From Carpediemonas membranifera BICM (Eukaryota; Protista; Fornicata): DNA of 64,000 nucleotides. Location of the stretch: NCBI GenBank assembly GCA_019828565.1, contig JAHDYR010000004.1:62001-126000 (forward strand). Direction: 5' to 3'. Positions within the stretch are counted from its first letter, which is position 1. Each line of letters begins with the position of its first letter. Shown one piece after another: positions 23 to 54,910 of the stretch. Position numbers and translations under genes: made by a program. The notes below the pieces were generated by a model, which saw only the letters and a list, made by a program, of their open reading frames with translations, did not search any database and was not told the origin of the DNA.

Positions 23-3000
23 ATGCAGCAGCGACGATGCAGAAAGTTCGTTCCACGCCTCCCACTTACGCAGCTGGTACGTTCCCCGCTTCGGTGCAGA
101 GATGCAGCCCGCGGCGAGTTCAAGAGCGCTTACGCAGTGTATCCGAGCAATGGTGCGTCCTCCCCGAGAATATCACGCAGCAGCGAGTGCAGAGCAGTAG
201 AGGACATGATCAGCGACGCCACGACGCGCGTCTTCGCCCCAGAGGACAAGCTCCACCTCAAGCCCATCGGATCCTCGCCCCTCACTGCTACAGACCTCAC
301 CCGCGTCCTCGACCACCTCTCGACATTGGACGTGCTGCCCAGAGAGTTCAGCATGAGGCTGACTGAGCCCGACCTCACTGTCCGTTTAGAAGGAGATGAA
401 CTCATCTCTGACATGCCCACCGACAGCCAGCTCAAGGGCCTGCTTGGCAATTGGAATAGGACAAGGCCGCGCTCTTGCATACACACCCTGGGCAACCACG
501 GCAGTATCATCACCAGCGTCGCCATCCTCCCGGACTTCACCATGGTCACTGGGTCACGCGACGGACCCGACCGACTATGGTCCACAAACGGGAAATGTAT
601 CAGGAGTTTCAGTGGCCGCGAGGATGGCGAGGGTGGCACACACCTGGCTGCAGCATCTGACGGGTCGACCCACCTTGCGTGTAGATGGGGGTGTGACCTC
701 AAACTCTGGGATGTGACAACAGGAGAGCTAATTCGAGTAATGAGGGGTCACATGAAGTCTGTGTACTGCGTGACACTCTCTTGTGATTGCAGAACTATTG
801 TGACCGGTCTCAGGGACGGTTCGATCATATCTTGGAATATTTACAGTGGGGTTTCTCTATGGGAAGTCCAGGGTCATTCTGGTTCGGTTGAGTGTATCAC
901 GTTCTCTCCGTGTGGCAAGACTATTGTCTCTGGCTCTGGGGATGACACGATCAAGGTGTGGGACGAAGCTTCTGGCATACTCGAGCAGACTCTGGAGGGC
1001 CATGCAGACAGTGTAAGCGCAGTGGCATTCTCTCATGACGGCGCCATGCTGGCGTCTGGGTCATATGACACTTCGATAAGGCTCTGGGACACCGAGACGT
1101 GGGCTTCTGTCATCGAACTCAGAGGCGACTCGGGCTGGGTCACAAGCCTCGCCTTCTCGCCTTGTGTCGGCATGCTTGCTTCGGGACATTCTAGCGGCGC
1201 TGTCAAGGTATGGAACAGCAGCTGTGCTGAGTCAATCAAAACGCTCAGGGGCCATAGGGCGTCGGTGCTCAGTGTAGCCATTTCCCCAGACGGGTCGACC
1301 CTGCTCTCTGGCTCTGACGACAAGACCGCCAAGCAGTGGCATATCAAGCACTCGCCAGAGATCAAGGAGGTCTGCGCCCAACCCACGCTCGGCGCCGACA
1401 TCCGCCTGCCGTCCGACGACTCGCCCCTCTACCTCGCCGACCTGGCGCGGGTCGTCATCCACATCCTCGCCACGGGCCTGCCCCGCTCCTTCGAGATGAG
1501 GCTGGCCCACCCACCTGTCGCTGTCAGCATGGATGATGGCCTCTTCTTTGAGACCCCATCAAACTCCGAGGTTAGCGGCCTACTCGCCCCGCTCAACCAG
1601 AGTCGCCTCAACAAGCTGGTCGCCCAGGCCTGCACCGACGCCGGGATCGCCCTGCCTGCCGCGTCCACCGCCGTCATGGACCCTAACGGCTTCATCTCAG
1701 TCTCGCCCGCGGATGACAAGATCGCCGCCGCCCTACTGCCGCTCAACCATCTTAGACTCGACGCAGCAGTTGCTAGAGTCTGCGCCCAAGCGGTCACGGC
1801 CAAGACCGCGATCAGAGTCACCCACGCCGACCTGCCCGCGCTGAAGAAGCTCCTCGCGCGCGTCGAGGCCTCTAGGGTCGCGCCCCGCTCATTCGAGGTT
1901 CAGCTCGACGACCCAGCCGCCACCGTCACCCTCGGCCCGACCGGCTTCGAGGTCGCCCCACCCAGCGATGTTGTCGATTATGTTGTCAGCGGCTTCAGCT
2001 TCCTGACCGCCCACCTCGACGCCATCTCGACCGCCGATGAGATCAGCCTGGGCGAGCACGCGCCGCTCACGATTGGCGACCTGAAGACCGTGGCTGGCCT
2101 CCTGCTGAGGCGGGAGACCTTGCCCACCTCATTCGCGATGAGGCTGACCCGCCCCGAATGCGCCATCAGCACTGACCGCAACGGCTTCTTCCAGTCGTCT
2201 CCTGAGACAGCCGAGGTGCAGACCGCGCTCAACCCGCTCAACCGTGCGCAGCTCAGCAGGCGGCTGTCCGAGATCTGCGCCGAGCCGATCACTGAGGAAA
2301 CAGACCTCTGCGTCGCCTTTGGCAGTCACGTCCCGTGCTTCGCCAGCGACCTGCGTCGCGTGCTCGACCACGTCACAGCCACGGCCGACCTGCCCCGGAG
2401 CTTCACGATGAGGCTGACCCACCCCGCGACAACCGTCACCCTCGGCCCGACCGGCTTCACCGCGACGGGCGCAAGCGAGGAGGTCAGCGCCATCATCGAG
2501 CATGCCAATCGTGCAAGCCCTGTTATCGCCATGCTACAAGCAGAAATGATGTCGAATTCCGCTCTCGATGCTGTTGACGAAGCACTGTACGTGGCCGCGG
2601 ATCTGAGCGACGCCAAGCGCCTGCTGGCCGCCGCCGGCCCGCACGCGACGCAGCACGAGGCGCGAGTGCTCGCGCTGAGGACCGACCTCGCCCGCCTCCA
2701 GCCCGTGCAGGCGCTCGCCAAGGACCCGATGCCCGCGCTCAAGGGGCCGCGTCAAGGAGGCGCTGGAGAGGAGCGACGAGCTCCACGCGCACATCATCAG
2801 CGGCGACGTCGACAAGATGCGCTCGAAGACGCTGCTCCGGAGTGTCAAGTTCGGCCCCGTCGTCCTCAACTGCCTCGACCGCGAGCGCCGGTCGCCGCTG
2901 CACAACGCGTTCGTGCACGACCAGCCGCAGGCCTTCGCGGCGCTGCTCAAGGCCGGCTGCCTGCTCGACGACGCCTTCCCGGACGGCCACCCGCTGCTGG

Positions 3001-4511
3001 CCGCCGTCGCCAAGCCACCGATGCTGGCCGCGATGCTGGCCGCGAGGGTTGACATCGACACCGTCAGCCGGAACACGACTGCGCTCGTGGTCGCCATCCA
3101 GGGCGGCCACTGGGACTCCGCGACGAAGCTGCTCGCCCGCGGCGCCGACCCCCTCCTCCCGCCGGTCGGCGTCAACGCGCTGCAGGCCGTCAAGGGCGTG
3201 GCCGACCCGCTCATGACCGGCGTGATCCGGGCCGCCATCAACGACGCCCTGACGAAGCAGCTCAGCGACGCCATCACGCAGGGCGACACCGCTGCCGTGA
3301 AGCGCCTGCTCGTGGCGGGCGTGTCCGCGAACGGCGTGGACGGCAAGATGCCGCCGCTCTTCGCTGCCGTCAAGGCGGGCAACTTCGACATCGTCAGCCT
3401 GCTGCTGAAGCACGGCGCCGACCGGGCCGCGACGTACAAGGGCAAGACGGCTGCGCAGACAGTCAAGAAGGGCAGCAACCTGCAGTATCTCCTGATCCAG
3501 GACCAGACGCCCGAGCCGCTCGTGCAGCCCGACCTCAACGCGGACATCACGAAGCCGGCGGGCAGCATCGCGTTCAGCCAGGCCGACCGCATCGGCGAGG
3601 GCGGCATGGCGGCCGTCTTCCGCGGCACGTACGGCGGCACCGCCTGCGCCGTCAAGGTCGTCGCGCAGGCCGACCTGAACGCGATGCAGGCCGACCGACT
3701 CCAGAGCGAGATCTTCATCCACAAGCAGCTGCGCCACAGCAACGTCGTCGCGCTCTACGCGCTCGAGCAGGACGACCGGGAGATCCGGCTCGCGCTCGAG
3801 CTCGCGTCGGGGTCGCTCTCGGCGCTGCTGCTCTCGAAGGTCGACCTGCCCTGGGACGCGCGGCTGCAGTTCGCGCGCGACATCGCGGCGGCCATGGCGT
3901 TCATCGTGGGCGAGGGCTACGAGCACAGGGACCTCAAGTCGCTCAACGTCCTCGTCGCGAAGGGCAGCGCCAAGATCAGCGACTTCGGGCTGACCGCGCT
4001 GCTCGACCAGCGCGTGGCGGACGTCGAGGGCTCGTGGCCGTGGATGGCGCCTGAGCGCTTCGACGGCGTGGGCGGCGAGAAGGCCGACGTCTACGCCTTC
4101 GGCATCACGCTCTGGGAGATCGCCGCGCGCGACATCCCGTACCGCCAGGAGCGCCTCGGGCTCGACGCCATCCGCGCGCACGTGCGGGCTGGCTACCGGC
4201 CGATGACCCCCGCGGGCACGCCGGCGGCCGTGGGTGAGCTGATCCGCCGCTGCGTGGCGCCCGACCCGCGCGACCGCCCCACCTTCGCGGAGGTCGTCGC
4301 CGCGCTGCCCGACAGCGTCGCGACCGAGATGTACACGGAGAGCGCCGTGCGCAACCACGAGGTCGGCACCTTCGCGAACGCCAGCGCGCCCTGGATGACG
4401 CTGTCCGAAGACGAGAGAGCAGCCGCGCTCGCCGCGATGGGCACGGTCACCGCGACATACCGCACGAACGCGCCGCACATCGCCGCATTGACCGACCTGA
4501 ACGACCTATAG
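23..4511 (+). CDS. Modular WD40 / linker-repeat / ankyrin / TKL-type protein kinase (~1495 aa once one +1 indel at ~2743-2746 is corrected)
   Basis: ORF 23-3052 has 7 WD40 repeats (GH...WD) and about six PRxFxMRL linker repeats. ORF 2817-4511 has ankyrin repeats (SPLHNA, TALVVA, PPLFAAVKAG) and an intact kinase (IGEGGMAAV, VKV, HRDLKSLN, DFG, WMAPE). The paralog at ~53140 reads through this junction in frame (PALRGRVKEALE), so the extra G is likely an error. Confidence 0.85.
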
Positions 4512-4587
4512 ACACTGGCTTGACCCCACCTCCCAATAAATCCCACATACGTGATCAACAGACAGTATGTAATCCTAATATGTAACT

Positions 4588-5589: not shown

Positions 5590-6374
5590 TAGCGTATCCT
5601 TGATGGTATAAGCGATAACCTAATGGCGAAACGACCGCTCAAGCTCGATCAGCGATCAAAAGTGCGTAAACTGCACAATGACACGGCGTTTAAAGCAGAC
5701 AGAGCTGTGGTGAACTCTGAGTTTCGATCATTTACACCACCACAAGTCTCAACGCCACCACTAACTTCCATGTCTAACTCCGATTCGAGGTCTGGCCAGC
5801 GTTGGCTGAGTCGGCCGCCGCACCCAACCCAATACCCACTATCTGTGTTGTAGAGGCGCATAGGGGGAGGCGATTGACCGTCAAGAAGACGGCGAAGTAT
5901 GATGGGGTGCTTTTGTCTTCTGACAGTTGCTTCTGGCCGTTCGCGGGACCCTTACCTTATCCCATCACGTCCACCACCCTTCTTAAACATAGACTATGAC
6001 TAGTTGGGCACGCAGTTCATGAGTGTCCTTAAATGGCCCTGATTCTGGGTCTACCAGACTGGTGCAGTTTTGGACTAAACAGAACTAAACAATCAGTTTT
6101 AACAAAACAACGCGAGACTCACATACCCGCCAGATGATTGATTACGAACAGCACTGCACGAATGCTCATGCATTGCCTTTGAACTGCATCGTTTTAAGAA
6201 GGGCGGTTGCTGCCATTCCCTCTCCTGCCACTCCTGTGCCTTTTCCCGCCGTAGCCGCCACTGCAAGGACGGAGATCGAACCTGCCGAGCAGTCATTGAA
6301 GAGCCGCATCGCGAAGCAACGGTGCGTCCTCCCCGAGAATCTCACGCAGCAGCGAGTGCAGAGCAGTAGAGGAC

Positions 6375-9300
6375 ATGATCAGAGACGCCACGACGCGCGT
6401 CTTCGCCCCAGATAGCAAGCTCCACCTCAAGCCCATCGGATCCTCGCCCCTCACCGCTACAGACCTCAGCCGCGTCCTCGACCACCTCTCGACATTGGAC
6501 GGGCTGCCCAGAGAGTTCAGCATGAGGCTGACTGAGCCCGACCTCACTGTCACGATGAGGTATGGCAAGCTGGCCGCCGACAAGCCCGACAGCGCCATCG
6601 ACGATCTGCTCGCTGCCTGGCATGCGAGGATGGCTGAGTGCATCCAGACGATGAAGGGTCACACCAACTGGGTGCTCAGCGTCGCCTTCCTCCCTGACGG
6701 CGCCATGGTCACTGGGTCACGCGATGGGACGACCAAGCTGTGGGACAAGCGCGGCGTGTGCACGACGATGGAGCATGGCGGGAAGGTTCGGTGCATCGCC
6801 GTCTCCCCGGACGGGTCGACCATCGCCTCGGGCGGGACTGACCGCAAGATCAAGCTGTGGAGGCGCGGCAGACTCGTCAAGACGCTCGAGGGACACACCG
6901 ATATTGTGAACAGCCTCGCCTTCTCCCGAGACGGCAAGACGCTGGTGTCCGGATCCGATGACAAGACAGTCAGGTCGTGGGACGTCGCCACCGGCGTGTG
7001 CAGGACGATGGAAGGGCACTCCCATTTGGTGCTCTCCGTCGCCATCTCCCCCGACGGCAAGACCATCGTCTCTGGATCAAGGGACAAGACAATCAAGGTG
7101 TGGGACGCTGAGTCGGGCAGACTCGAGCAGACTCTGGAGGGCCACAAGAATCCTGTCAACGCCGTCGCCATCTCCCCGGACGGCGCTCTTCTGGCCTCTG
7201 GGTCTGGCGACAACACCATCAGACTCTGGGACACCAGGACCTGGGAGTGCGTCGCCGTCCTCATGGGGCACACGCACTATGTCAACAGCGTCGCCTTCTC
7301 GCCCGACGGCAGGACCCTCGCCTCTGGGTCTGGTGACAACACCACCAAGTTCTGGAGCATCGGCAGCGGCGAGTGCTTCGAGACGCTCTGGGGTCATGAC
7401 AGAGATGTGAACAGCGTCGCCTTCTCCCCAGACGGGTCGACCCTGCTCTCTGGATCTGACGACAAAACCGCCAAGCAGTGGTCCCTTGGTCGCTCTCCCG
7501 AGCTCACCGCCCTCGACCAGACCCTCGCCCAGCCTGTCCCGGCCGCGGCCATCGTCCGCCTCGAGGGCACCGTCGCCGACCTCACCCGCGTCCTCGACCA
7601 CCTCTCGGCGCGGCCCAGAGAGTTCAGCATGAGGCTGACTGAGCCCGACCTCACTGTCACGATGAGGTATGGCAAGCTGGCCGCCGACAAGCCCGACAGC
7701 GCCATCGACGATCTGCTCGCTGCCTGGCATGCGAGGATGGCTGAGTGCATCCACACGATGAAGGGTCACACCGATGACGTGACCAGCGTCGCCTTCCTCC
7801 CTGACGGCGCCATGGTCACTGGGTCATGGGATGGGACGACCAAGCTGTGGGACAAGCGCGGCGTGTGCACGACGACGATGGAGCATGGTGGGGCTGTTCG
7901 GTGCATCGCCGTCTCCCCGGACGGGTCAACCATCGCATCGGGCGGGACTGACCGCAAGATCAAGCTGTGGGACCAGACCGGCAGACTCGTCAAGACGCTC
8001 AAGGGTCACACCAGGAAGGTTAACAGCCTCGCCTTCTCCCCAGACGGCAAGACGCTGGTGTCCGGATCCTGGGACAAGACAGTCAGGTCGTGGGACGTCG
8101 CCACCGGCGAGTGCAGGACGATGGAAGGGCACTCCCATTTGGTGCTCTCCGTCGCCATCTCCCCCGACGGCAAGACCATCGTCTCTGGATCAAAGGACAA
8201 GACAATCAAGGTGTGGGACGCTGAGTCGGGCAGACTCGAGCAGACTCTGGAGGGCCACACGAGTTATCTCGCCACAGTCGCCATCTCCCCGGACGGCGCT
8301 CTGCTGGCCTCTGGGTCTGGCGACAACACCATCAGACTCTGGGACACCAGGACCTGGGAGTGCGTCGCCGTCCTCATGGGGCACACGCACTATGTCAACA
8401 GCGTCGCCTTCTCGCCCGACGGCAGGACCCTCGCCTCTGGGTCTTGGGACAACACCACCAAGCTCTGGAGCATCGGCAGCGGCGAGTGCTTCGAGACGCT
8501 CTGGGGTCATGACAGAGAGCTGAACAGCGTCGCCTTCTCCCCGGACGGGTCGACCCTGCTCTCTGGATCTGACGACAAAACCGCCAAGCAGTGGCATATC
8601 AAGCACTCGCCAGAGATCAAGGAGGTCTGCGCCCGACCCACACTCGGCGCCGACATCCGCCTGCCGTCCGACGACTCGCCCCTCTACCTCGCCGACCTGG
8701 CGCGGGTCGTCATCCACATCCTCGCCACGGGCCTGCCCCGCTCTTTTGAGATGAGGCTGGCCTTCCCTCCCGCGACAATCACGTTGGACAAGAACAGGTA
8801 TTTCAAGACGAGCGCCGATAATTCTGAGCTGACAGAGCTGATCAAATCTTTCAACACCCACATATCTCAGCGTATGGCCGAGAAGATCCTCCGCGAGCTT
8901 TCAGCTGTCGTGAATACGATCACCGCCGACTCGGCTCCGGAGTCCCTGCGCGCCTTAGTGCGTCGTCTCGACCAATACAAGAGCACCGCGAATGCAGCTG
9001 GGGATGGGCCCCGTTCGTCTGCCGTGCGTGACCCTGTTCTGCGGAGGCACCTCGCCGTGGCCGCGTTTGCCCAAGACTTCCTTGACCTCGTCGACGGTGG
9101 CATGAGCCCAAAGATCGCTGTCACCGCTCTGAAACACTCCGACGGTGCCACACCAGCCGACTATCACGACGCTTCGGAGCTCGTGCAGACCGCCATCGAC
9201 GCGTTCATCGCCCAGCCGACGTCCCAGCACGCCGAGCGTATTCCCACGAGCTACACCCACGCCGGCCTGATTCGCGCGCTGGCGTACACGAAGGAGTACA

Positions 9301-9545
9301 TGGAGGACGCCGAGGAGGAGCTCGCCGAGTACCTGGCGGCCGTCCCCGAGCCTGACCCCCTCGCCATCCTCGTCGAGGCCCGGATCCGCGGGTCAGCCCC
9401 CCTCACGCGGTTCTTCTGCGAGACATTCCCGCAGCTGGCAGAGAGATTCGCGACGGCCGATGAGCGGTCAACCGACGACAACGAAGCCGAGCCTCAGCCG
9501 CAGCCGGAGTCAGAGGACGACCGCATCCAGCAGGCCTGGGAGTAG
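6375..9545 (+). CDS. Linker + two 7-blade WD40 cassettes + linker + helical region (N-terminal part of a WD40-AAA gene, ended by TAG)
   Basis: Two near-identical ~1107-bp units (MKGH at 6651 and 7758). The paralog at 29006 has CAG at the position of this TAG and continues into the AAA domains. Confidence 0.85.
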   Translation: MIRDATTRVFAPDSKLHLKPIGSSPLTATDLSRVLDHLSTLDGLPREFSMRLTEPDLTVTMRYGKLAADKPDSAIDDLLAAWHARMAECIQTMKGHTNWVLSVAFLPDGAMVTGSRDGTTKLWDKRGVCTTMEHGGKVRCIAVSPDGSTIASGGTDRKIKLWRRGRLVKTLEGHTDIVNSLAFSRDGKTLVSGSDDKTVRSWDVATGVCRTMEGHSHLVLSVAISPDGKTIVSGSRDKTIKVWDAESGRLEQTLEGHKNPVNAVAISPDGALLASGSGDNTIRLWDTRTWECVAVLMGHTHYVNSVAFSPDGRTLASGSGDNTTKFWSIGSGECFETLWGHDRDVNSVAFSPDGSTLLSGSDDKTAKQWSLGRSPELTALDQTLAQPVPAAAIVRLEGTVADLTRVLDHLSARPREFSMRLTEPDLTVTMRYGKLAADKPDSAIDDLLAAWHARMAECIHTMKGHTDDVTSVAFLPDGAMVTGSWDGTTKLWDKRGVCTTTMEHGGAVRCIAVSPDGSTIASGGTDRKIKLWDQTGRLVKTLKGHTRKVNSLAFSPDGKTLVSGSWDKTVRSWDVATGECRTMEGHSHLVLSVAISPDGKTIVSGSKDKTIKVWDAESGRLEQTLEGHTSYLATVAISPDGALLASGSGDNTIRLWDTRTWECVAVLMGHTHYVNSVAFSPDGRTLASGSWDNTTKLWSIGSGECFETLWGHDRELNSVAFSPDGSTLLSGSDDKTAKQWHIKHSPEIKEVCARPTLGADIRLPSDDSPLYLADLARVVIHILATGLPRSFEMRLAFPPATITLDKNRYFKTSADNSELTELIKSFNTHISQRMAEKILRELSAVVNTITADSAPESLRALVRRLDQYKSTANAAGDGPRSSAVRDPVLRRHLAVAAFAQDFLDLVDGGMSPKIAVTALKHSDGATPADYHDASELVQTAIDAFIAQPTSQHAERIPTSYTHAGLIRALAYTKEYMEDAEEELAEYLAAVPEPDPLAILVEARIRGSAPLTRFFCETFPQLAERFATADERSTDDNEAEPQPQPESEDDRIQQAWE

Positions 9546-9551
9546 TGCGGC

Positions 9552-12410
9552 ATGGCCAGCGCCGCGATGGACGAGCTGCTAGCGATGAGCGGCATGCGCG
9601 CGCTGAAGAGGGAGTGCGTCAACCTCGCTCAGCAGATCCGCGTCCGCAACGACCCGCGCACTGCGCAGCTCTACGCCGCCACGCCGATGCAGCTCAACTT
9701 CATCCTCAGCGGCAACCCTGGCACGGGCAAGAGCACGTGCGCTAAGCTGATCCACCGCTTCCTGGCCGACATCGGCGCTCGCGATGACACGTTCACCGAG
9801 CGCAACGGCGGCACCCTCGCCGACACGTCGCCGCTGGACATCACGAAGGAGTTGGACAGCCTCTTCCCGGCCGGCTTCAGGGGCACCGTCTTCATCGACG
9901 AGGCCTACCAGCTGAACCCCGCCCAGAAGAAGTCGGGCAAGTCAGTCATGGACCGCATCCTGGACGTGGCCGAGACGCGCCGCGGCGACGTCACGATCAT
10001 CCTGGCAGGCTACAAGGACGACATGAAGGACCTGCTGGCGACGAACCCGGGTCTGAACAGCCGCTTCTCGCGCCAGTTCGTGCTCGAGGACTTCGACAAG
10101 GACACGCTGCAGGAGATGTTCACCCAGCTGGCGACCAAGCAGGGCTGGTCCCTCGCCCCGGCAGTTGCCGAGATCGCTGGCCGTCGCCTCGAGCGCTTCA
10201 AGTCGCGCGACACCTTCGCCAACGGCCGCACCGTCCGCAACATGTTCAGCCAGGCCATCGAGGCTGCGGCCAAGCGCCTCATCTTGGGCGGCGAGCACAT
10301 GCTGCTGCCCGAGGACATCCTCGGACCAGCGCCATCGGCCGACTCGAACCCCGAGCTGCGCCGTCTCCTGGCCGAGCTGGACGGCTTGACCGGGCTTGGC
10401 GAGGTGAAGGAGGCTGTCCGGGGTCTGCTTCAGACAGCGAAGGTCAACTACGACAACGAGCTCCACCTCCGCCCGCTGCACGCCTTCGCACTCAACCGCC
10501 TCTTCTTCGGAAACCCTGGGACGGGCAAGACGACCGTCGCACGCCTGTACGGCCAGATCTTGAAGCACACGGGCCTGCTCAGCAGCGGCGAGGTCATCGA
10601 GAAGCGGCCCAGCGACCTGGTCGGCGACGCCGTGGGGCAGAGCCGGTCGAGAACGAAGGCCGCGATCGAGGAGGCGCGCGGCAAGGTGCTGCTCATCGAC
10701 GAGTGCTACTCCCTCGACGACGGCGTGTACGGCAAGGAGGCGCTTGACACGATCGTTGAGCGCGTGCACAACAAGCCCGGCGACGACATCGCGGTGCTCA
10801 TGCTCGGCTACGAGGAGCCCATCCGCCGCATGCTGCGCAACCAGAACGCGGGGCTGGCGAGCCGCTTCGACCCCGAGAGCGCGTTCATCTTTGCCGACTT
10901 CGACGACACCGCGCTCGAGGCCATCCTGAAGCACGCCATCGCCGAAAGCGGCCTCGCGTGCCGCAGAGCTGTCGTTGTCAACGCGATACAGCTGCTGGCC
11001 AAGGAGCGCGTCAAGCCCAACTTTGGCAACGCCCGCGCTGTGGTCAACCTCGTGAACAAGGCGAAGCGCCACATGATCCAGCGCGATCCAACCTCGCGAA
11101 AGATCGCAGTTGCTGATCTCACGCAGGCTGACGACGGCAAGGACCCGTTCGAGCCGCTCGACGGCCTGTACAAGGTCAACCACATCCGGCAGAGGTTCGA
11201 GGACCTCGTCCGTATCAAGCAGGGCATGGAGCGGAACGGCAAGTCAGCCGCCTCAATGCTGGTCCGCAACTACGTCTTCTCGGGCTCCCCGGGCACAGGC
11301 AAGACGACCATCGCGCGGTGCATGGCCAAGATCCTCTACCGCCTGGGTGTGCTGGCAACCGACACGTGCAAGGAGGTCGTCGCACGCGACATGATGGCAG
11401 GCTACGTGGGGCAGACGCCGGGCCGAGTCAAGGAGCTGATGGACGAGGCGGTCGGCGGCGTCTTCTTCGTGGACGAGGCTTACGGCCTTGGAGAGGGCAT
11501 GTTCGGCAAGGAGGCGATCGAGACGATGCTCAGCGAGATGACGTCGGACAAGCACAAGGGCAAGACCGTCGTCGTCCTGGCGGGCTACCGCGCCGATCTC
11601 GACCGCATGATGGACGTCAACGCCGGCGTCCGCTCGCGCTTCACCGAGCCGATCGACTTCCCCGACTGGTCGGCGGCCGACTGCACCAGCTTCATCGCGG
11701 GCAAGCTCGAGGGGGAGCACCTCAAGTTCGGCTCAAACGAGCAGGCCGCTCTGCGCAGCCACATCGAGGCCGTTGTTGGCCGGGCTTCCTGGGCCAACGC
11801 ACGAGACGCCAACACGATCTTCGAGGACCTGCTGCGCCAGCAGGCGATCCGCGCCGCTTCGGTCGTCGAGGCTGAACCTTCGATCGCGGCCGATGACGTC
11901 GACGCCGCCATGGCCAAGTGCAAGCGGAACCACCCTGAGAGCGCCAGCCTGCCGCATCTCGTCGAGGAGCAGCCAGTCGCCCTCGCCACCGACAGCGAGG
12001 TCCAGCCCAGACGCGAGACGCGGCAGGACGTCAGAGTTGAGCAAGTCGAGGAAGTCGACGAGACTGTCGATGTGGTGACTCGCGTTGAGCGCGACGAGGG
12101 CGTAACCGACGAGATCTGGGAGGAGCTGGAGCTGGCCAAGCGCGAGGAGCAGCGCCGTCGGGAGGAGGAGGAGCGGCGTCTGCGGGAGATCGAGGAACAA
12201 CTCAAGCGTGAGAAAGAGGAGAAGTCGCGCCGTGAGCTCGAGCGCCAGCAGCGGGAGGCCGAGGAGAGGCGCCGGAAGGAGGCGGCCATTCAGCAGAGAC
12301 TGAGGCAGATCGGGCGGTGCCCCGTTGGATTCGAGTGGATCAAGGTCGGCGGCGGGTACCGGTGTGCTGGCGGCAGCCACTTCGCGAGCGACGCCGAAGT
12401 GTTTGTCTGA
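9552..12410 (+). CDS. Triple CbxX/CfxQ/SpoVK-type AAA+ ATPase with E/R/K-rich coiled coil and C-terminal [22 protein letters not shown] motif
   Basis: Three Walker A motifs (GNPGTGKS, GNPGTGKT, GSPGTGKT), three Walker B motifs (FIDEAY, LIDECY, FVDEAY), NPGLxSRF-type Arg fingers and NGR/NAR sensor-2 motifs. Confidence 0.9.
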   Translation: MASAAMDELLAMSGMRALKRECVNLAQQIRVRNDPRTAQLYAATPMQLNFILSGNPGTGKSTCAKLIHRFLADIGARDDTFTERNGGTLADTSPLDITKELDSLFPAGFRGTVFIDEAYQLNPAQKKSGKSVMDRILDVAETRRGDVTIILAGYKDDMKDLLATNPGLNSRFSRQFVLEDFDKDTLQEMFTQLATKQGWSLAPAVAEIAGRRLERFKSRDTFANGRTVRNMFSQAIEAAAKRLILGGEHMLLPEDILGPAPSADSNPELRRLLAELDGLTGLGEVKEAVRGLLQTAKVNYDNELHLRPLHAFALNRLFFGNPGTGKTTVARLYGQILKHTGLLSSGEVIEKRPSDLVGDAVGQSRSRTKAAIEEARGKVLLIDECYSLDDGVYGKEALDTIVERVHNKPGDDIAVLMLGYEEPIRRMLRNQNAGLASRFDPESAFIFADFDDTALEAILKHAIAESGLACRRAVVVNAIQLLAKERVKPNFGNARAVVNLVNKAKRHMIQRDPTSRKIAVADLTQADDGKDPFEPLDGLYKVNHIRQRFEDLVRIKQGMERNGKSAASMLVRNYVFSGSPGTGKTTIARCMAKILYRLGVLATDTCKEVVARDMMAGYVGQTPGRVKELMDEAVGGVFFVDEAYGLGEGMFGKEAIETMLSEMTSDKHKGKTVVVLAGYRADLDRMMDVNAGVRSRFTEPIDFPDWSAADCTSFIAGKLEGEHLKFGSNEQAALRSHIEAVVGRASWANARDANTIFEDLLRQQAIRAASVVEAEPSIAADDVDAAMAKCKRNHPESASLPHLVEEQPVALATDSEVQPRRETRQDVRVEQVEEVDETVDVVTRVERDEGVTDEIWEELELAKREEQRRREEEERRLREIEEQLKREKEEKSRRELERQQREAEERRRKEAAIQQRLRQIGRCPVGFEWIKVGGGYRCAGGSHFASDAEVFV

Positions 12411-12677
12411 GTAGTAAAGATTCCAAGCAGGCGATCCCCAGACCGCACGCTCGGCATAGATCGGTAAAGTGATTGATGGGCAGACACGCTCTCCCGGGGC
12501 CTGTCGCTGGTCTCGTTACTCGCCTCAATGTCGACCTCATCTCATGAGGTGGCATCATCGCGGATTCCATCGACTGGGCCAAGTCGCATCCGAAGATGTC
12601 GAGAAAGACTGGCGAGGGTAATGGCCGAATGTCAGACCAGTGGTAGTTGGCTCAGCATTTACACCCGCCCCGACCCA

Positions 12678-13127
12678 TCACCAGCCCTCCTCCGTCACAG
12701 GCCCGGGCCGGACCTCCGTCGCCCGCCTGAACGCGGCCGTCTCCCACATCGCCCTCATCGGGGCGGTGACCATCTCGGGGCCGACGAGCCCGAGCTCCTC
12801 GTGCGTGTTGCGGCCCAGGCCGTACCAGCCGAAGGCTGTGGCCAGCCAGTAGCGGTCGTTCGAGTCTGCCCGGACGGCCGTGACGACCTCGGGGAAGTCC
12901 CACTCGACGTACTCGCTCTCGTTGTGGACGAAGATGCCGTAGAACCCGCTGCCGTCCGCCCGCACGAGCACCCACAGGAACTCGCTATCGAAGTCGTAGT
13001 GCAGGAAGGCGCGGCGCACCTGCCAGGGAAGCGTGACCGGGAACGGCGTGGCGCTCTCCTCCGAGTGGATGTTAAGGTAGGGGCGAAGCCACGCCCTGAC
13101 CGAGCCAGCGCAGTGCAGCCCGCGGTC
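12678..13127 (-). pseudogene. 3' fragment of the RCC1-like gene at 44381-45992, carried in a segmental duplication
   Basis: Near-identical to 44381-44830; similarity stops abruptly after ...cgcggtc at 13127. Confidence 0.75.
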
Positions 13128-36190: not shown

Positions 36191-36232
36191 ATCGTTTGTT
36201 CCTCGAGGATACAGCTTCGATGTTGAGAAGTT

Positions 36233-39200: not shown

Positions 39201-40169
39201 GTCGAACAGGACGGACACGACTTGCTTAAGAATGCTAGCCTTGACGGTGGGAAGGACACTCTGACGGGAACCGAGAGAAAACACACAACGAGCTGAATTT
39301 ACCTCAGAACGGCAGAATTCAGCTCGGTGGCCCGGCTTCTGGCACTTGGAACAGGTTGTCTTCGGAGCAGGGCATCGGCGAGCGGAGTGACCGACCTTAC
39401 CGCAGTTGAAGCACACGAATGGCTTCTTCTCGTGCTTGGGCTTGTCGATCGGCTTGCCTTTTGAGGGGGCTACGTTCGTGCGGTCAGGCTCGCGTCGATG
39501 AGGGTTCTTCGGACCGCTCCCCGTGTGCCGTGTATGGGAGGGCGTGGTGTTGGTACGCTGTGAGTCGGAGACCCCCGCAGCGCCGAAGGAAGCGATCATC
39601 TCCTTGGACTCCTTGAGGTCGCGTGACATGACGAGGACATCAGCCATTGCGTCCTTGAGATCCTTGCGCTCCGTTGATTCTCTGACTCGATACATGATGC
39701 GACTGTTGTTGGGGAACTTGAAGCAGCGGCTGTACGTCTCCTTCAAGACGTCCTCGGGATCTTCGGGTTGAACGAGCTTCAAGAGCAGATTGAATCGGCG
39801 GTTCACTCGAGCAACCTCATCAGGCTCGAAGGACTTGGCGGGGACTCGGAAGAGCTGTAGACGCATGCTCGGGCGAGAAGGTCGAAGGGCAGCACCGAGG
39901 CGCTTGAGGACTCGTTCATCTTGGGCTGCGACACGACGTTTCTTACGGAGCTTCGCGGAGAGCAGGAGAGGAGTGTCTTCAACCTCTTCGTCGTCGTTAA
40001 GGCCTGCTAGCTCTGCTATGCTAGGCTCGATGAGGTCAATAACATCATCGCGGCCGCCTAAGGCGCGATGATCGTGGAGGTTATCCGCAAAGTCCAAAAG
40101 AGCGTCCATGGAGGACTTCTTCAGGAGAGGCGGATTCTTCTTCAGGCTTCTGTAAGTTTCCGTACCCAT
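36233..40169 (-). CDS. gag-pol: Inner element Gag-Pol (2 CCHC knuckles, protease, RT, RNase H, integrase, chromodomain); one +1 indel at 37947-37951
   Basis: CFNCGKVGHSARRC, CSKCQKPGHRAEFC, LFDSGA, YIDD, TDASD, TDHRNL, H..H..CPEC, IDTMG/SDGG/VVER, EWHVERI..YLVHWVGF. Removing one C gives TPRDVLQKSLDDLKQAL in frame. Confidence 0.93.
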
Positions 40170-40190
40170 ATGTTTTGGTAGTACTAGTAC

Positions 40191-40312
40191 TGTGGTTCAA
40201 TGGGTGTTGAACTTTTACTGAGGAGAAGACTCGACACAAGGGTGTCGAGGAGAAACTCCTTGACTATTAAATATAACGTAAATCTGTGTAACTTTGGGTA
40301 GGACCCACAACA
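40191..40312 (-). repeat. 5' LTR of inner element (122 bp)
   Basis: Ends 21 bp before the gag ATG (40169). Confidence 0.95.
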
Positions 40313-40316
40313 CCTT

Positions 40317-43300: not shown

Positions 43301-43755
43301 AACTCGAACGCCTAGTGCTCCTGAGATATCCTCACAAGGCCCCATCCAAGATTCTGCCTCCAGTCCGCGGCCCGCTACAACTCCTCAGGGAAGGGAAGAG
43401 CCCCAACACATTCGTCCTCCGTGACCTCGTCACCAAGTCCGAGCTGCTCGTCCACCAGGACCGCCTCATTCGCTTCGACCCAGGCACAGCAGACCTCAAG
43501 ACACTCGAGCGCATCGCCGCATACGAACAAGACGAACAACAAGTCTCCGCCATCGTCGGCCACCGCGAGCGCAACCGACGCCTCGAGCTCCTCGTCCACT
43601 GGGAAGGCCTAGAAGACTCCGAGGACTCGTACATTCCGTATAACGCATATTACGACCGCCTCGCCGCCCTGGATGACTACCTACGCCTCAACCCAGGTCT
43701 CACGCCCCTCTTCGCACGTTACAAGCGGAAGTTCCGGGGCAATGGCCGCCGTTAG
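40317..43755 (+). CDS. pol: Outer element gag 3' part and pol (protease-like, RT, RNase H, integrase, chromodomain) in four frameshifted pieces
   Basis: MLIGKDLL, LDLRSGYWQ, PFGLKNAP, YVDD, TDAS, TDHKNI, H..H..CPVC, IDTLG/TDQG/VVER, RGP, LLVHWEGLEDSEDSY. Confidence 0.9.
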
Positions 43756-43783
43756 CTGGCTAGCTTCGCCTTGAGGAGGGAAG

Positions 43784-43840
43784 TGAGAGCCAGTGCAGTT
43801 TATGTAAACAGATCTACCTGCGCAAGCCAACAATGGCACA
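43784..43840 (+). repeat. 3' LTR of outer element (57 bp)
   Basis: Identical to 33631-33687, preceded by PPT and followed by TSD. Confidence 0.95.
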
Positions 43841-43844
43841 AGGC

Positions 43845-44112
43845 TGAGGAGAGGCGCCGGAAAGAAGAGGAGGCTCGTCGTCTGCGGGAGATCGAGGAAC
43901 AACTCAAGCGTGAGAAAGAGGAGAAGTCGCGCCGTGAGCTCGAGCGCCAGCAGCGGGAGGCCGAGGAGAGGCGCCGGAAGGAGGCGGCCATTCAGCAGAG
44001 ACTGAGGCAGATCGGGCGGTGCCCCGTTGGATTCGAGTGGATCAAGGTCGGCGGCGGGTACCGGTGTGCTGGCGGCAGCCACTTCGCGAGCGACGCCGAA
44101 GTGTTTGTCTGA
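43845..44112 (+). pseudogene. Detached C-terminus (coiled coil + CPVGFEW..CAGGSH) of the WD40-AAA gene copy 2
   Basis: Matches the 3' end of 9552-12410 plus extra coiled-coil sequence. Confidence 0.88.
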
Positions 44113-44380
44113 GTAGTAAAGATTCCAAGCAGGCGATCCCCAGACCGCACGCTCGGCATAGATCGGTAAAAGTGATTGATGGGCAGACACGCTCTCCCGG
44201 GGCCTGTCGCTGGTCTCGTTACTCGCCTCAATGTCGACCTCATCTCATGAGGTGGCATCATCGCGGATTCCATCGACTGGGCCAAGTCGCATCCGAAGAT
44301 GTCGAGAAAGACTGGCGAGGGTAATGGCCGAATGTCAGACCAGTGGTAGTTGGCTCAGCATTTACACCCGCCCCGACCCA

Positions 44381-45992
44381 TCACCAGTCCTCCTCCGTCA
44401 CAGGCCCGGGCCGGACCTCCGTCGCCCGCCTGAACGCGGCCGTCTCCCACATCGCCCTCATCGGGGCGGTGACCATCTCAGGGCCGACGAGCCCGAGCTC
44501 CTCGTGCGTGTTGCGGCCCAGGCCGTACCAGCCGAAGGCTGTGGCCAGCCAGTAGCGGTCGTTCGAGTCTGCCCGGACGGCCGTGACGACCTCGGGGAAG
44601 TCCCACTCGACGTACTCGCTCTCGTTGTGGACGAAGATGCCGTAGGACCCGCTGCCGTCCGCCCGCACGAACACCCACAGGAACTCGCTATCGAAGTCGT
44701 AGTGCAGGAAGGCGCGGCGCACCTGCCAGGGAAGCGTGACCGGGAACGGCGTGGCGCTCTCCTCCGAGTGGATGTTAAGGTAGGGGCGAAGCCACGCCCT
44801 GACCGAGCCAGCGTAGTGCAGCCCGCGGTCAGTCACGGCGAATGCCGTAAACTGCTCGTGGAACCAAATGCAGTCGACTGGGAAAGGAAGCCAGGCGAAC
44901 GTGCGTACGGGTGCAGTGTGGCTGAGCCCGAGCTGGCCGAAGCCGTTGTACCCACAGACAAATGCCTGGGTCCCACGGACCAGCGCGGTCTGGCCGAAGC
45001 TGCTATACAGGGCAGTGGGCATAAAGTCGACGGGCAGAGCGACAGGGGTGAAGTCCTGGATGAACCGATCGGGCAGCCCGACCCCGAGGGAGCCGTGAAT
45101 GTTGCTGCCGCAGGCCACCACGCCCGCAGGGGTGACAATAAAAGCGTGTGTAGCGCTTCCCAGGAGGCTAACGGCGAGGTCGGCCTCGCGCCAGTGAGGC
45201 AGGGTCTGCTCGAACTTCGCGATGCGGGGTGCGGTCTCAAACGTCACGCGGGCAGGGGGTGATTCGTGTGTGACCCACGTCCACAAGCCCGCTGTCGTCT
45301 ACGGCGTCCCATTTGAACACACCGTGTGCCGTCTCAGCGACCATGCAGTGGAAGACGTGCAGGGCAATGACAGGGGGCAGGCGTACTCTGGTGAGCGGCT
45401 CGGGGTCCAGTGGCTGGGCTCGTTCGTTCTTGGCACAAACCTGCGCGAAGAGTCGGCCAGCGTAGTGGGTGTATTCAATCGAAGTCAAGCCGCTTTCAGA
45501 TTCCTCGGTCACACGACCTGCAGTCTTACAGGCCTCATTCCATGTGAAGAAAAGCTTCTTGCAGAGGAACCAGAGCTCAGGGGCGTTGGGGCCGAGGGCT
45601 GGGCCCATGCCCGCCCCGGCCTGCATTAGTGTAGACCAGATAGTACCCTGGAGGAGGGTGTATATGCGGTCGGGGAGCTGCTCGTTGGGCTTTAGGGGGA
45701 TGTTCATGCTCAAAGGTGGATCATTTTGCAAAATTGACATGATTCGATGGATGATCAGTTGAGCGTTTTCGTTATTGAAACGCAAGAGTGAGAGAGCATC
45801 GGTGAGATGTTCAATAGTCTCGATTTCTTTGGGAAAAGGCTGTTCTACGCTGATTAGTTCGCCTAAACCAAATGCACGATCCAACAGGCGAGGAATATCT
45901 CCCGGGATATGCGCAGTAATGCGCTGTGCTTCTTTCAGTATCGTATTCATCTGCCGCAATGTGGTATCGTGCGCAGGCGTAGTTTTTTGCAT
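44381..45992 (-). CDS. RCC1/BLIP-II-like repeat protein (frameshift near 45260)
   Basis: VVACGSNIHGSLGVG, FVCGYNGFGQLGL and YGLGRNTHEELGL motifs; two overlapping ORFs (45237-45992, 44381-45286). Confidence 0.7.
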
Positions 45993-50193: not shown

Positions 50194-53100
50194 GTGCGAT
50201 CTGGCCGAGGAAGGAGGCTCATCATTTGATTGGCGGCATCACCCCGCAGTGGGCGGCGAGTCACGCCATCTCGACGATGGCTGCCACCAGAGACACCTGG
50301 ACAAACACGAACTTTTGGGACGTCACGATGTCGGACTGCTCAAAGTCGCAAACACCATCCAAATTCAGCGAGATGAATCAGCGACGATGCAGAAAAAGTT
50401 CGTTCCACGCCTCCCACTCTACGCAGCTGGTACGTTCCCAATCCCGTTGGTGCAGAGATGCAGCCCGCGGCGAGTTCAAGAGCGCTTACGCAGTAGATCT
50501 GAGCAATGGTGCGTCCTCCCCGAGAATCTCACGCAGCAGCGAGTGCAGAGCAGTAGAGGACATGATCAGCGACGCCACGACGCGCATCTTCGCCCCAGAT
50601 AGCAAAGCTCCACCTCAATCCCATCGGATCCTCGCCCCTCACCGCTACAGACCTCACCCCGCGTCCTCGACCACCTCTCGACGCGGCCCAGAGGAGTTCA
50701 GCATGAGGCTGACTGAGCCCGACCTCACTGTCACGATGAGGTATGGCAAGCTGGCCGCCGACAAGCCCGACAGCGCCGTCGACGACCTGCTCGCTGCCTG
50801 GAATGCGAGGGATGGCTGGAGTGCATCCAGACGATGAAGGGTCACACCAACTGGGTGATCAGCGTCGCCTTCCTCCCCGACGGCGCCATGGTCACTGGGT
50901 CAGCGGGATGGGACGACCAAGCTGTGGGACAAGCGGCGTGCAAGACGACGATGAAGCATAGCGGGGGCTGTTCGGTGCATCGCCGTCTCCCCGGACGGGT
51001 CAACCATCGCATCGGGCGGGACTGACCGCAAGATCAAGCTGTGGGAGGCGCGGCAGACTCCGTCAAGACGCCTCGAGGGGCACACCAGGGATGTGAGAAG
51101 CGTCGGTTTCTCCCTCAGACGGCAAAGACGCTGGTGTCCGGATCATATGACAACACAGTCAGGACGTGGGACGTCGCCACCGGCGTGTGCAGGACGATGG
51201 AAGGGCACTCAGATTTTGGTGCTCTCCGTCGCCATCTCCCCTGACGGCAAGACCATCGTCTCTGGATCAAAGGACAAGACAATCAAGGTGTGGGTCGCTG
51301 AGTCGGGCAGACTCTGAGCAGACTCTGGAGGGCCACACGAATTCTGTCGCCGCCGTCGCCATCTCCCCGAACGGCGCTCTGCTGGCCTCTGGGTCTGGCG
51401 ACCACACCATCAGACTCCTGGGACACCAGGACCCGGGAGTGCGTCGCCGTCCCTCAGGGGGCACGCGAGCTTTGTCCGCAGCGTCGCCTTCTCGCCCGAC
51501 GGCAGGACCCTCGCCTCTGGGTCTTGGGACAACACCATCAAGCTCTGGAGCATCGCTAGCGGCGAGTGCTTCGAGACGCTCAGGGCCATGACGATTGGGT
51601 CCGCTGCGTCGCCTTCTCCCCGGACGGGTCGACCCTGCTCTCTGGATCTGACGACAAAAACCGCCAAGTAGTGGTTCCTTGGTCGCTCTCCCGAGCTCAC
51701 CGCCTCGACTAGACTCCTCGCCGAGCCTGTCCCGGCCGCGGCCATCGTCCGCCTCGAGGGCACCGTCGCCGACCTCACCCGCGTCCTCGACCACCTCTCG
51801 GCGCGGCCCCGAGAGTTCAGCATGAGGCTGACTGAGCCCGACCTCACTGTCACGATGAGGTATGGCAAGCTGGCTGCCGACAAGCCCGACAGCGCCGTCG
51901 ACGATCTGCTCGCTGCCTGGCATGCGAGGATGGCTGAGTGCATCCAGACGATGAAGGGTCACACCGATGACGTGCTCAGAGTCGCCTTCCTCCCCGACGG
52001 CGCCATGGTCACTGGGTCAGTGGGATGGGACGACTCAAGCTGTAGGGCAAGCGCGGCGTGTGCACGACGACGATGGAGCATGGCGGGAAGTTTTGTGCAT
52101 CGCCGTCTCCCCGGACGGGTCGACCATCGCCTCGGGCGGTGATGACCGCAAGATCAAGCTGTGGGACCAGACCGGCAGACTCGTCAAGACGCTCGAGGGG
52201 CACACCGATGTTGTGAACAGCCTCGCCTTCTCCCGAGACGGCAAGACGCTGGTGTCCGGATCCGATGACAAGACAGTCAGGACGTGGGACGTCGCCACCG
52301 GCGCGTGCAGGACGATGGAAGGGCACTCCAGATTGGGTGCTCTCCGTCGCCATCTCCCCCGACGGCAAAGACCATCGTCTCTGGATCGTCTGATGACACG
52401 ATCAAGGTGTGGGACGCTGAGTCGGGCAGACTCCGAGCAGACTCTGGAGGGCCACACGAGTTATCTCACCACCGTCGCCATCTCCCCGGACGGCAAGACC
52501 CTCGCCTCTGGGTCTTGGGACAACACCACTCGCTCTGGAGCATCGACAGCGGCGAGTGCTTCGAGACGCTCAGGGGTCATGCCGATAAGGTGTGGAGCGT
52601 CGCATTCTCCCCAGACGGGTCGACCCTGCTCTCTGGATCTTCCGGACAAGACCGTCAAGCAGTGGCATATCAAGCACTCGCCAGAGATCGAGGAGGTCTG
52701 CGCCCGACCCACACTCGGCGCCGACATCCGCCTGCCGTCCGACGACTCGCTCCTCTACTCGCCGACCTGGCGCGGGTCGTCATCCACATCTCGCCACGGG
52801 CCTGCCCCGCTCTTTTGAGATGAGGCTGGCCCCACCCCGAATGCATACCGTCTCTCTTGGTCCTACCGGATTCACGTCGAGCTAAGCCGCCGATGTTGAA
52901 GCCCCTTCTCGAGCTACTCAACCGCCACCTCGTGATGCAGAAACTGTTGACTGAAACACGTGCTCTCGACGCCGCTGACGAAGCGCTGTACGTGGCCGCG
53001 GCTCTGAGCGACGCCAAGCGCCTTGCTGGCTGCCGCCGGCTCCGCACGCGGAGTAGCATCGAGGCGAGTGCTCGCGCTGAGGACCGACCTCGCCCGCCTC

Positions 53101-54910
53101 CAGCCCGTGCAGGCGCTCGCCAAGGACCCGATGCCTGCGCTCAGGGGCCGCGTCAAGGAGGCGCTGGAGAGGAGCGACGAGCTCCACGCGCACATCATCA
53201 GCGGCGACGTCGCCAAGATGCGCTCGAAGACGCTGCTCCGGAGTGTCAAGTTCGGCCCCGTCGTCCTCAACTGCCTCGACCGCGAGGGTCGGTCGCCGCT
53301 GCACAGCGCGTTCGTGCACGACCAGCCGCAGGCCTTCGCGGCGCTGCTCAAGGCCGGCTGCCTGCTCGACGACGTTTTCCCGGACGGCCACCCGCTGCTG
53401 GCCGCCGTCGCCAAGCCGCCGATGCTGGCCGCGATGCTGGCCGCGAGGGTTGACATCGACACCGTCAGCCGGAACACGACTGCGCTCGTGGTCGCCATCC
53501 AGGGCGGCCACTGACTCCGCGACGAAGCTGCTCGCCCGCGGCGCCGACCCTCCTCCCGCCGGTCGGCGTCAACGCGCTGCAGGCCGTCAAGGGCGTGGCC
53601 GACCCGCTCATGGCCGGCGTGATCCGGGCTGCCATCAACGACGCCCTGACGAAGCAGCTCAGCGACGACATCACGCAGGGCGACACCGCTGCCGTGAAGC
53701 GCCTGCTCGTGGCGGGCGTGTCCGCGAACGGCGTGGACGGCAAGATGCCGCCGCTCTTCGCTGCCGTCAAGGCGGGCAACTTCGACATCGTCAGCCTGCT
53801 GCTGAAGCACGGCGCCGACCGGGCCGCGACGTACAAGGGCAAGACGGCTGCGCAGACAGTCAAGAAGGGCAGCAACCCGCAGTATCTCCCTGATCCAGGA
53901 CCAGACGCCCGAGCCGCTCGTGCAGCCCGACCTCAACGCGGACATCACGAAGCCGGCGGGCAGCATCGCGTTCAGCCAGGCCGACCGCATCGGCGAGGGC
54001 GGCATGGCGGCCGTCTTCCGCGGCACGTATGGCGGCACCGACTGCGCCGTCAAGGTTTGCCGCGCGGGCCGACCTGAACGCGGTGCAGGCCGACCGACTC
54101 CAGAGCGAGATCTTCATCCACAAGCAGCTGCGCCACAGCAACGTCGTCGCGCTCTACGCGCTCGAGCAGGACGACCGGGAGATCCGGCTCGCGCTCGAGC
54201 TCGCGTCGGGTCGCTCTCGGCGCTGCTGCTCGAAGGCCGACCTGCCCTGGGACGCGCGGTTGAAGTTCGCGCGCGACATCGCGGCGGCCATGGCGTTCAT
54301 CGCGGGCGAGGGCTACGAGCACAGGGACCTCAAGTCGCTCAACATCCTCGTCGCGAACAAGAAGGCCAAGATCAGCGACTTTGGGCTGACCGCGCGGCTC
54401 GACCAGCGCGTGGCGGACGTCGAGGGCTCGTGGCCGTGGATGGCGCCCGAGCGCTTCGACGGCGTGGGCGGCGAGAAGGCCGACGTCTTCGCCTTCGGCA
54501 TCACGCGCTCTGGGAGATCGCCGCGCGCGACATCCCGTACCGCCAGGAGCGCCTCGGGCTCGACACCATCCCGCGCGCACGTGCGGGCTGGCTACCGGCC
54601 GATGACCCCCGCGGGCACGCCGGCGGCCGTGGGCGAGCTGATCCGCCGCTGCGTGGCGCCCGACCCGCGCGACCGCCCCACCTTCGCGGAAGTCGTCGCC
54701 GCGCTGCCCGACAGCGTCGCGACCGAGATGTACACGGAGAGCGCCGTGCGCAACCACGAGGTCGACACCTTCGCGAACGCCAGCGCGCCCTGGATGACGC
54801 TGTCCGAAGACGAGAGACAGCCGCGCTCGCCGCGATGGGCACGGTCACCGCGACATACCGCACGAACGCGCCCAGCGCCCCGGCCTGCGCACGCTGAACG
54901 ACATGTATAG
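50194..54910 (+). pseudogene. Second WD40-linker-ankyrin-kinase gene (array-type WD40 cassettes + kinase tail), heavily frameshifted in this assembly
   Basis: 5' part matches 24058 onward, followed by two WD40 cassettes; 52960-54870 matches 2560-4470. In-frame TAG near 51668. Confidence 0.8.

Follow-up and report, generated by a model that had tools for sequence, protein, structure and literature searches.

Recombining WD40 propeller cassettes joined to kinase or triple AAA+ modules in a Carpediemonas membranifera gene cluster that probably encodes receptor-like proteins

The stretch analysed here, called the window, comprises, according to an exact-protein look-up, positions 62001-126000 (64,000 nucleotides) of the 470,618-bp contig JAHDYR010000004.1 of the free-living metamonad Carpediemonas membranifera (GenBank assembly GCA_019828565.1; window coordinate = contig record coordinate - 62,000) and contains a cluster of five loci, A to E, which share WD40 propeller cassettes. 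These loci belong to a gene family that probably encodes intracellular receptor-like proteins combining recombining propeller sensors with varied enzyme modules, and variable non-self would be the likeliest thing that they recognise. Self-comparison of the window yields kilobase-scale alignments among the loci with 88-100% identity, far above chance, and gives one divergent cassette for locus A, two for B, five for C, two for D and at least four for E. Pfam finds WD40 propellers in all loci; A and D also contain ankyrin repeats (ANK) and a protein kinase, B and C three AAA and three AAA_lid_6 domains. For these searches the pieces of loci A-E that are split by a stop or frameshift were searched separately, and the annotators' spliced 2055-aa model of locus B was used as the database returned it. 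An earlier examination made from the letters alone (the sequence-only reading) had described four loci sharing parts in a protist. The source is indeed a protist, and the domain content, cassette counts and effector types are borne out by Pfam and self-comparison; the number of loci was one too low, as locus E had been missed.

The cassette is a unit of approximately 1,110 bp consisting of a new domain of about 70 amino acids, which we call L, and one 7-blade WD40 propeller. Apart from the divergent copy in locus A the cassettes are 86-100% identical at the nucleotide level; blades inside one cassette share about 55% nucleotide and about 42% amino acid identity. An extra L domain follows the last propeller, and locus A has five L domains. 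The conserved core of the domain reads DLxRVLDHL...LPRxFxMRLTxPxxTV, and its sequence has no match in Pfam or the PDB. An AlphaFold (AF2) model calculated from 67 L copies has a predicted local distance difference test score (pLDDT) of 84 and shows the order helix-three strands-helix (alpha-beta-beta-beta-alpha). Foldseek comparison of this model with the PDB revealed no significant structural neighbour (best E 0.54). An assignment as double-stranded RNA-binding domain was not supported, as such domains were matched in the same comparison only at E 1-2 with template modelling (TM) scores of 0.24-0.31. The arrays are preceded by a short conserved leader (approximately 30-90 aa) that terminates in MIRDATTRVFAPEDKL, and several gene models start at that methionine. 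A helical region of approximately 215 aa, specific to the C. membranifera family, joins the last L domain to the AAA modules. In Pfam, the leader, the L domain, the helical region, the C-terminal motif and the ORFs (open reading frames) upstream of the arrays, the last two described below, all stay at noise level.

Amino acid variation between the cassettes is periodic, with peaks at registers 3, 4, 6, 22 and 24 counted from the GH dipeptide and lesser ones at registers 30 and 32. Registers 4/6 and 22/24 flank a conserved V and a conserved D and match codons 7/9 and 25/27 of the Podospora HNWD repeats, which have been reported to be positively selected and located on the top interaction face of the propeller (PMC1805685). 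All 13 cassettes read in frame once insertion columns of a few copies are dropped; for the counts, and for that purpose only, rare insertion columns were dropped and unresolved codons set to X. The four-register set was taken a priori from the Podospora HNWD repeats. The ratio of non-synonymous to synonymous divergence (dN/dS) is 3.9 at the four top-face codons versus 0.55 for the rest of the propeller codons, both values being derived from paralogous cassettes that are subject to gene conversion, with technical indels filtered out. Among 20,000 random register sets only a single one attains the non-synonymous divergence that was observed. Positive selection diversifies four positions on the top face of each blade, while the scaffold stays homogeneous.

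The cassettes are mosaics. The nearest relative of a cassette switches blade by blade, 51% of the informative site pairs fail the four-gamete test, and a test modelled on the pairwise homoplasy index (PHI) gave 0/1000, neighbouring sites being more compatible than shuffled ones in all 1000 shuffles. This mosaicism indicates recombination, and recombination or gene conversion has moved whole-propeller cassettes from locus to locus as well as inside single loci.

Sensor arrays have also been re-joined to different C-terminal modules. The sequence-only reading had set a comparison of WD40 and effector trees beforehand as a test of module recombination, and the trees are incongruent. In the propeller tree cassette D1 is sister to C4 with a support of 98 in the Shimodaira-Hasegawa-like approximate likelihood ratio test (SH-aLRT), and D2 groups with B2 and C5 (SH-aLRT 89, below the level of 95 that earns a star). 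The propellers of locus D are nested within those of AAA-type genes, whereas its kinase matches that of locus A. The propeller of locus A forms a long separate branch, though the ANK-kinases of A and D are 96.6% identical.

The family extends beyond the window. Enumeration with profiles had been proposed together with the tree test, and a search with the L-domain profile against 1.84 billion representative proteins returned 28 proteins. For 24 of these the source could be traced; all are from C. membranifera and lie on more than 10 contigs, so that on sequence matches the family appears restricted so far to this organism (24 traced of 28 matches). P0245, P0247, P0250, P0252, P0254 and P0306 are uninterrupted models that combine one or two propellers and several L domains with an ANK-kinase. 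A third effector class is formed by models ending in another kinase with or without IBR or RhoGEF (P0246, P0251, P0253, P0265, P0267 and P0269), and P0248 consists of L domains only. The intact paralogues read through the point at which locus A changes frame; WD40-L-ANK-kinase is therefore a genuine single-gene architecture. One family member has been auto-annotated as 'HET-E'. The sequence-only reading had not recognised the architecture as a described one, and we too found no description in the literature of a WD40-L family in Carpediemonas nor of the triple-AAA family discussed below; the C. membranifera genome paper makes no mention of WD40 (PMC8516963). Next to one family member, P0243, lies a gene that is flanked by two genes for glycoside hydrolase family 25 (lysozyme-like) proteins (L004 16237-18795), which may be relevant to bacterial feeding.

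A tentative alternative would make these proteins ordinary scaffolds of endogenous signalling, such as WD40 kinases of the cytoskeleton or the cell cycle, which were expanded in this lineage and whose top faces reflect subfunctionalisation to cellular partners. The partner domains would suit it, since kinase, RhoGEF, IBR and Ras/Roc-ANK-kinase combinations are typical of signalling, and so would the dispersed members, which stand singly among housekeeping genes, and the lack of a death or toxin domain in Pfam. Stable partnerships would, however, not be expected to produce a dN/dS of 3.9 confined to the ligand-binding positions together with a homogenised scaffold and cassette exchange. In addition, the L profile found the family in no other organism, and the propellers are of the type known from STAND conflict proteins. 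The closest outside relatives of the propellers are WD40 arrays joined to NACHT, NB-ARC, nSTAND1, caspase-like or kinase domains in cyanobacteria, actinobacteria, myxobacteria and Sordariales fungi, with 45-56% identity over all seven blades. We therefore prefer the receptor-like interpretation; an immune or non-self function as such would follow by analogy with the systems compared below.

Among these are the HNWD/NWD genes of Podospora anserina (het-e, het-d), which are fungal NLRs with WD40 sensors. There, exchange inside one gene and among paralogues homogenises near-consensus WD40 repeats, positive selection acts on the same two pairs of residues of the propeller top face, and pseudogene members share repeats with active ones, with variable effector parts (PMC1805685). 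The likeness to HET-E-type genes that had been proposed from the sequence holds for the hypervariable top face and the mosaicism, and the conserved unit differs: what is exchanged here is the whole 7-blade propeller with its L domain (1.1 kb) and not a single 42-aa blade. Furthermore, the C. membranifera proteins have neither NACHT nor an N-terminal HET domain, and their enzymatic module is C-terminal. With the bacterial and fungal STAND NTPases that carry WD40 (with or without a caspase or trypsin-like peptidase) the family shares a repeat sensor joined to a variable output; it lacks their central STAND NTPase, and none of them has the L domain. The family diversifies as HNWD/NLR-type repertoires do, yet it is not a member of them.

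Locus A (23-4511; this and all other loci A-E lie on the forward strand) was delineated with Pfam, the L profile, gene calls, the frame junction and kinase motifs from the translation. It begins with a leader. The L profile places its L domains at 287-502, 1433-1642, 1844-1987, 2078-2281 and 2342-2554; Pfam places the divergent 7-blade propeller at about 509-1357 and ANK repeats at about 2886-3460, and the tyrosine kinase-like (TKL) type kinase at 3579-4307 is supported by Pfam and motifs. GenBank annotates the locus as two genes of 1009 aa and 432 aa. Locus D (50194-54910) has a leader at about 50373, two cassettes (50650-51770 and 51771-52770, the second missing a blade because of a 126-nt deletion), an incomplete L domain (52787-52852, L profile) and the ANK-kinase (52962-54872) that nearly equals that of A. 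In the translations all catalytic motifs of the kinase are kept, namely the G-loop, AVK (VAIK lysine), HRDLK..N, DFG and APE. The top Pfam model is PK_Tyr_Ser-Thr and the nearest named relatives are TKL kinases, and the module is classed from its sequence as TKL-like.

The ANK plus TKL-like kinase arrangement resembles that of TNNI3K and RIPK4, and the best outside matches are TKL kinases from Thecamonas and Saprolegnia, followed by RIPK4 and TNNI3K. The identity to TKL/ANK and ROCO/LRRK kinases is only 24-39%, and in contrast to these the C. membranifera genes have their WD40 part N-terminal and in multiple copies and lack Roc-COR. LRRK2 also combines ANK, kinase and WD40 propeller. The closest relative of the ANK-kinase module, P0124, is a 760-aa C. 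membranifera protein from another contig with 42% identity, in which a Ras/Roc-like small GTPase precedes an ANK-TKL kinase; the module thus has a further N-terminal partner outside the WD40 family.

Locus B (6375-12410; KAG9396943.1, 'CbxX/CfqX', 2055-aa model) encodes L-propeller-L-propeller-L (6456-8903; Pfam and L profile), the family-specific helical region (8904-9542), three AAA+ domains whose Walker A motifs lie near 9711, 10509 and 11283, then a charged coil, and at the C-terminus a Cys motif (~12312-12407). The second of the two introns annotated there (~9509-9587) does no more than skip an in-frame TAG; it is a prediction device and is not supported, as paralogue C translates the same stretch in frame. 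The first annotated intron (6323-6350; 28 nt, GT...AG) precedes MIRDATTRV, the conserved start that other members use; 6375 is probably the true start and the upstream 'exon' probably a conserved 5′ region. Locus C (24241-33916) consists of a leader, five cassettes starting at 24509, 25631, 26731, 27841 and 28949 (array 24509-30058), a sixth L domain from 30059 onwards, and then the helical region followed by three AAA+ domains (30923-33634). Its open frame is limited to 29006-33916 (P0001, 1636 aa), and the final 282 nt of this frame are inserted DNA.

The WD40-AAA junction was seen in loci B and C only, is covered by one open frame in C, and the two copies differ by 165 substitutions; this fusion, too, is real. 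Between B and C there are just eight indels, seven of them multiples of three, and this pattern shows that they are true paralogues under coding constraint; the AAA pair itself has too few changes to judge dN/dS. The AAA modules of both loci (PF00004 x3 and PF17866 x3 in Pfam) belong to the CbbX/EccA/SpoVK clade of AAA+ ATPases, and among solved structures EccA1 and the Rubisco activase CbbX come closest to them (best PDB matches, E about 1e-31). All three AAA domains keep Walker A and B, with three GxPGTGK[ST] and three hhhDE motifs. Judged by such motifs both the kinase and the AAA+ modules look active.

Triple AAA+ proteins of the CbbX/EccA/SpoVK type occur eukaryote-wide, and the modules of B and C are 29-42% identical to them over 71-100% of the module. 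Both loci also share with this family the C-terminal motif CPxG(F/Y)xW...GG(W/Y)RCxGGSH, which in locus C is displaced. This motif, for which Pfam has no model, was found by regular expression in 42 of the 119 triple-AAA homologues (P0002-P0120), and phmmer matched the tail in 50 of the 119. The relatives come from dinoflagellates, oomycetes, haptophytes, diatoms, fungi and aphelids. Their N-termini show no recognised domain, ANK, LRR plus ANK, helicase or Ig-like domains; WD40 was found once, in the metagenomic fragment P0013. An L domain and helical region ahead of the AAA domains distinguish the Carpediemonas proteins from all of these. As the triple-AAA+ family is found throughout eukaryotes with variable N-termini, the module may be a motor or hub instead of an output domain.

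The long range of locus C results from a 10.2-kb insertion (33635-43845) into the coiled-coil tail of the AAA gene. The original 3′ end (43846-44112), which includes the conserved C-terminal Cys motif (44014-44109), lies beyond it and is cut off from the ORF, and the locus end at 44112 given in the sequence-only reading is correct. The displaced flank is homologous to that of locus B (12144-13127 = 43846-44830, 98.4% identical). The insertion holds two Ty3/gypsy chromovirus copies placed back to back and contains a Gag zinc knuckle, reverse transcriptase (RT), RNase H, integrase, a chromodomain and long terminal repeats (LTRs), as is characteristic of Ty3/gypsy chromoviruses. The chromovirus genes on the minus strand (36233-40169; RT, RNase H, integrase and chromodomain in Pfam) are accompanied by two 123-nt LTR segments (34368-34490 and 40191-40313). 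These form direct repeats with a spacing of 5.8 kb and are 100% identical, which suggests that this element inserted recently. The second element (40478-43190, plus strand) is partial. At the edges of the insertion a 58-nt direct repeat and an imperfect duplication of about 120 nt of the target gene were found, which is not a normal target-site duplication.

Locus E and the block upstream of it (56853-64000) are a copy of 21756-28864, a duplication that had been missed before. The leader of E is located at about 59343, its cassettes start at 59619, 60747, 61850 and 62972, and the locus is cut by the window end. Two ORFs of 550 and 326 aa without recognisable domains precede both array C (21473-24240, plus strand; the longer one annotated as 523 aa, without Pfam match) and array E (56846-59526), having been duplicated together with the arrays. 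Tandem Repeats Finder detected no repeat in the window, because it handles periods of up to 500 nt, well below the 1.1 kb of the cassette. Exact-protein look-ups with the ORFs of locus D and of the 3′ flank of locus C gave no match. The window also holds genes for a HECT ligase, a CDK-like kinase and a CFAP96-like protein. Elsewhere on the contig, at a distance of about 200 kb, three tandem gene calls of 248 aa each were made for ribosomal protein L2 (L005 19039-22025).

Several observations weigh against the receptor-like interpretation, in addition to the derivation of the dN/dS values from paralogues that undergo gene conversion. As assembled, every one of the five loci is interrupted. In locus A a single extra base (+1 frameshift) near 2741 puts the two halves out of frame; this base is absent from locus D, from the twin of D at the contig start and from the intact paralogues. 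In locus B an in-frame TAG (9543-9545) separates the cassettes from the AAA domains, at a place where locus C has CAG. Locus C carries frameshifts in cassettes 1, 2 and 4 and a TAG at 28853-28855 besides the retroelement insertion. Locus D is heavily frameshifted by numerous one-base indels and has a TAG at 51669-51671, and locus E has a TAG at 63989-63991 and about 1.4% one-base indels. The ANK-kinases of A and D differ with a dN/dS of about 1.0, so that at least one copy is unconstrained. No N-terminal HET, death or toxin domain was recognised by Pfam, the leader being without match, and PADLOC returned generic kinase and P-loop matches only, with no assignment to a defence system. Pfam scans of all long window ORFs revealed no NACHT or NB-ARC domain, as the description of the system as NACHT-free had implied; the only cross-matches, sub-threshold or due to P-loops, fell inside the AAA domains, with NPHP3_N under its cut-off and nSTAND3 lacking any single stretch that passed alone. 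Finally, assembly redundancy may account for some of the apparent copies.

The last point leads to a further explanation, namely that the combinatorial cluster is mainly an artefact made up of a decayed pseudogene field and a redundant or chimeric Nanopore assembly of a repeat-rich region. The genome was assembled from MinION R9.4 and Illumina reads, repeat masking preceded gene prediction, and probable haploidy has been reported (PMC8516963). In the window, positions 40000-64000 show about 0.7-1.5% single-base indels against paralogues or the twin copy, enriched in homopolymers and with few substitutions, as expected for an unpolished Nanopore consensus; loci D and E have roughly one such indel every 70-100 bp. 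Between cassettes C3 and E3 there are 0 substitutions and about 14 one-base indels, and 98 homopolymer-enriched indel events separate C from E over 7.1 kb, including stretches free of substitutions. A technical origin must be assumed for many of them. Moreover, at least 24.9 kb at the start of the contig (record 1-24885) are an inverted copy of window 28504-59286 with 98.8-99.7% identity, in which almost only indels differ. The contig end coincides with the beginning of cassette array E, and in a three-way comparison most indels are private to a single copy. Either a recent large inverted duplication, with short-read polishing failing in both arms, or assembly redundancy fits the inverted twin. 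In the twin an F-actin capping beta gene was called (L008 7919-8679), and no long ORF is present at the matching place in the window (~46.4-47.2 kb).

The masking of repeats before gene calling and the lesion in every locus would likewise fit such an artefact. We nevertheless regard it as quite improbable. The same architectures are present in intact gene models on other contigs, the 165 substitutions between B and C stand against only eight indels, nearly all in frame, and C and E differ by about 3.6% substitutions over the upstream 3.5 kb. The inverted copies differ by an entire 5.9-kb gypsy element (34368-40312), which the twin lacks, and sequencing noise cannot yield the selection signal.

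Some of the lesions recur in several copies, and these shared ones are likelier to be real: the TAG common to cassettes C4, D1 and E4 (28853, 51669, 63989), the missing blade and 1-nt deletion of the second D cassette, and the deletion common to C2 and E2. At all four in-frame stops (9543-9545, 28853-28855, 51669-51671 and 63989-63991) TAG replaces CAG (Gln), and simple C-to-T nonsense changes are the probable origin. Reassignment of the stop codon, as in some diplomonads in which TAR encodes Gln, was rejected here, because long ORFs, such as the 1740-aa HECT gene, are found without internal stops. Altogether, the copies in the window are recent duplicates in various states of damage, and the birth-and-death pattern proposed earlier is seen in the stop codons, the frameshifts, the retrotransposon insertion and the relaxed constraint on the kinase.

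For the receptor-like interpretation the following mode of action can be envisaged. Each protein would carry one to five ligand-binding units, a unit being an L domain plus a propeller with hypervariable top face, followed after further L domains by ANK and a TKL-type kinase, by the triple CbbX/EccA-type AAA+ module, or by another kinase with or without IBR or RhoGEF. Each propeller would bind a diverse protein or peptide ligand on its top face, arrays of propellers might provide avidity or several specificities, and the L domains could serve as spacers or contact modules. Clustering driven by the ligand might activate the kinases through trans-phosphorylation, or two triple-AAA chains might close into a ring of six domains, comparable to the CbbX and EccA hexamers. 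The targets would most likely be variable non-self, such as products of prey or viruses, mobile elements or conspecific partners. Arrays that are damaged could still donate cassette variants; in Podospora, pseudogenes have been proposed as donors of repeat variants (PMC1805685). A more far-reaching version, which we consider doubtful, would see here a NOD-less innate recognition system of a metamonad, in which propeller arrays act as sensors, the triple AAA+ or the TKL kinase replaces the STAND switch, and silent, damaged arrays such as C1-C4 serve as a donor library that supplies expressed genes with new propeller variants through gene conversion.

Receptor repertoires that diversify themselves through repeats occur in animals, plants, fungi and bacteria; almost all of those known are organised around a STAND (NACHT/NB-ARC) switch, and to our knowledge very little is known about such repertoires in free-living protists. 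The C. membranifera family shows the same evolutionary machinery in a deep-branching metamonad, with a homogenised scaffold, a selected binding face, cassette exchange and effector swapping. It differs from the known repertoires in having no STAND domain, in using the whole propeller as exchange unit and in its new small L domain. For the widespread uncharacterised eukaryotic triple-AAA+ family, which is repeatedly found with repeat-type N-termini (ANK, LRR and here WD40), it provides a first contextual clue.

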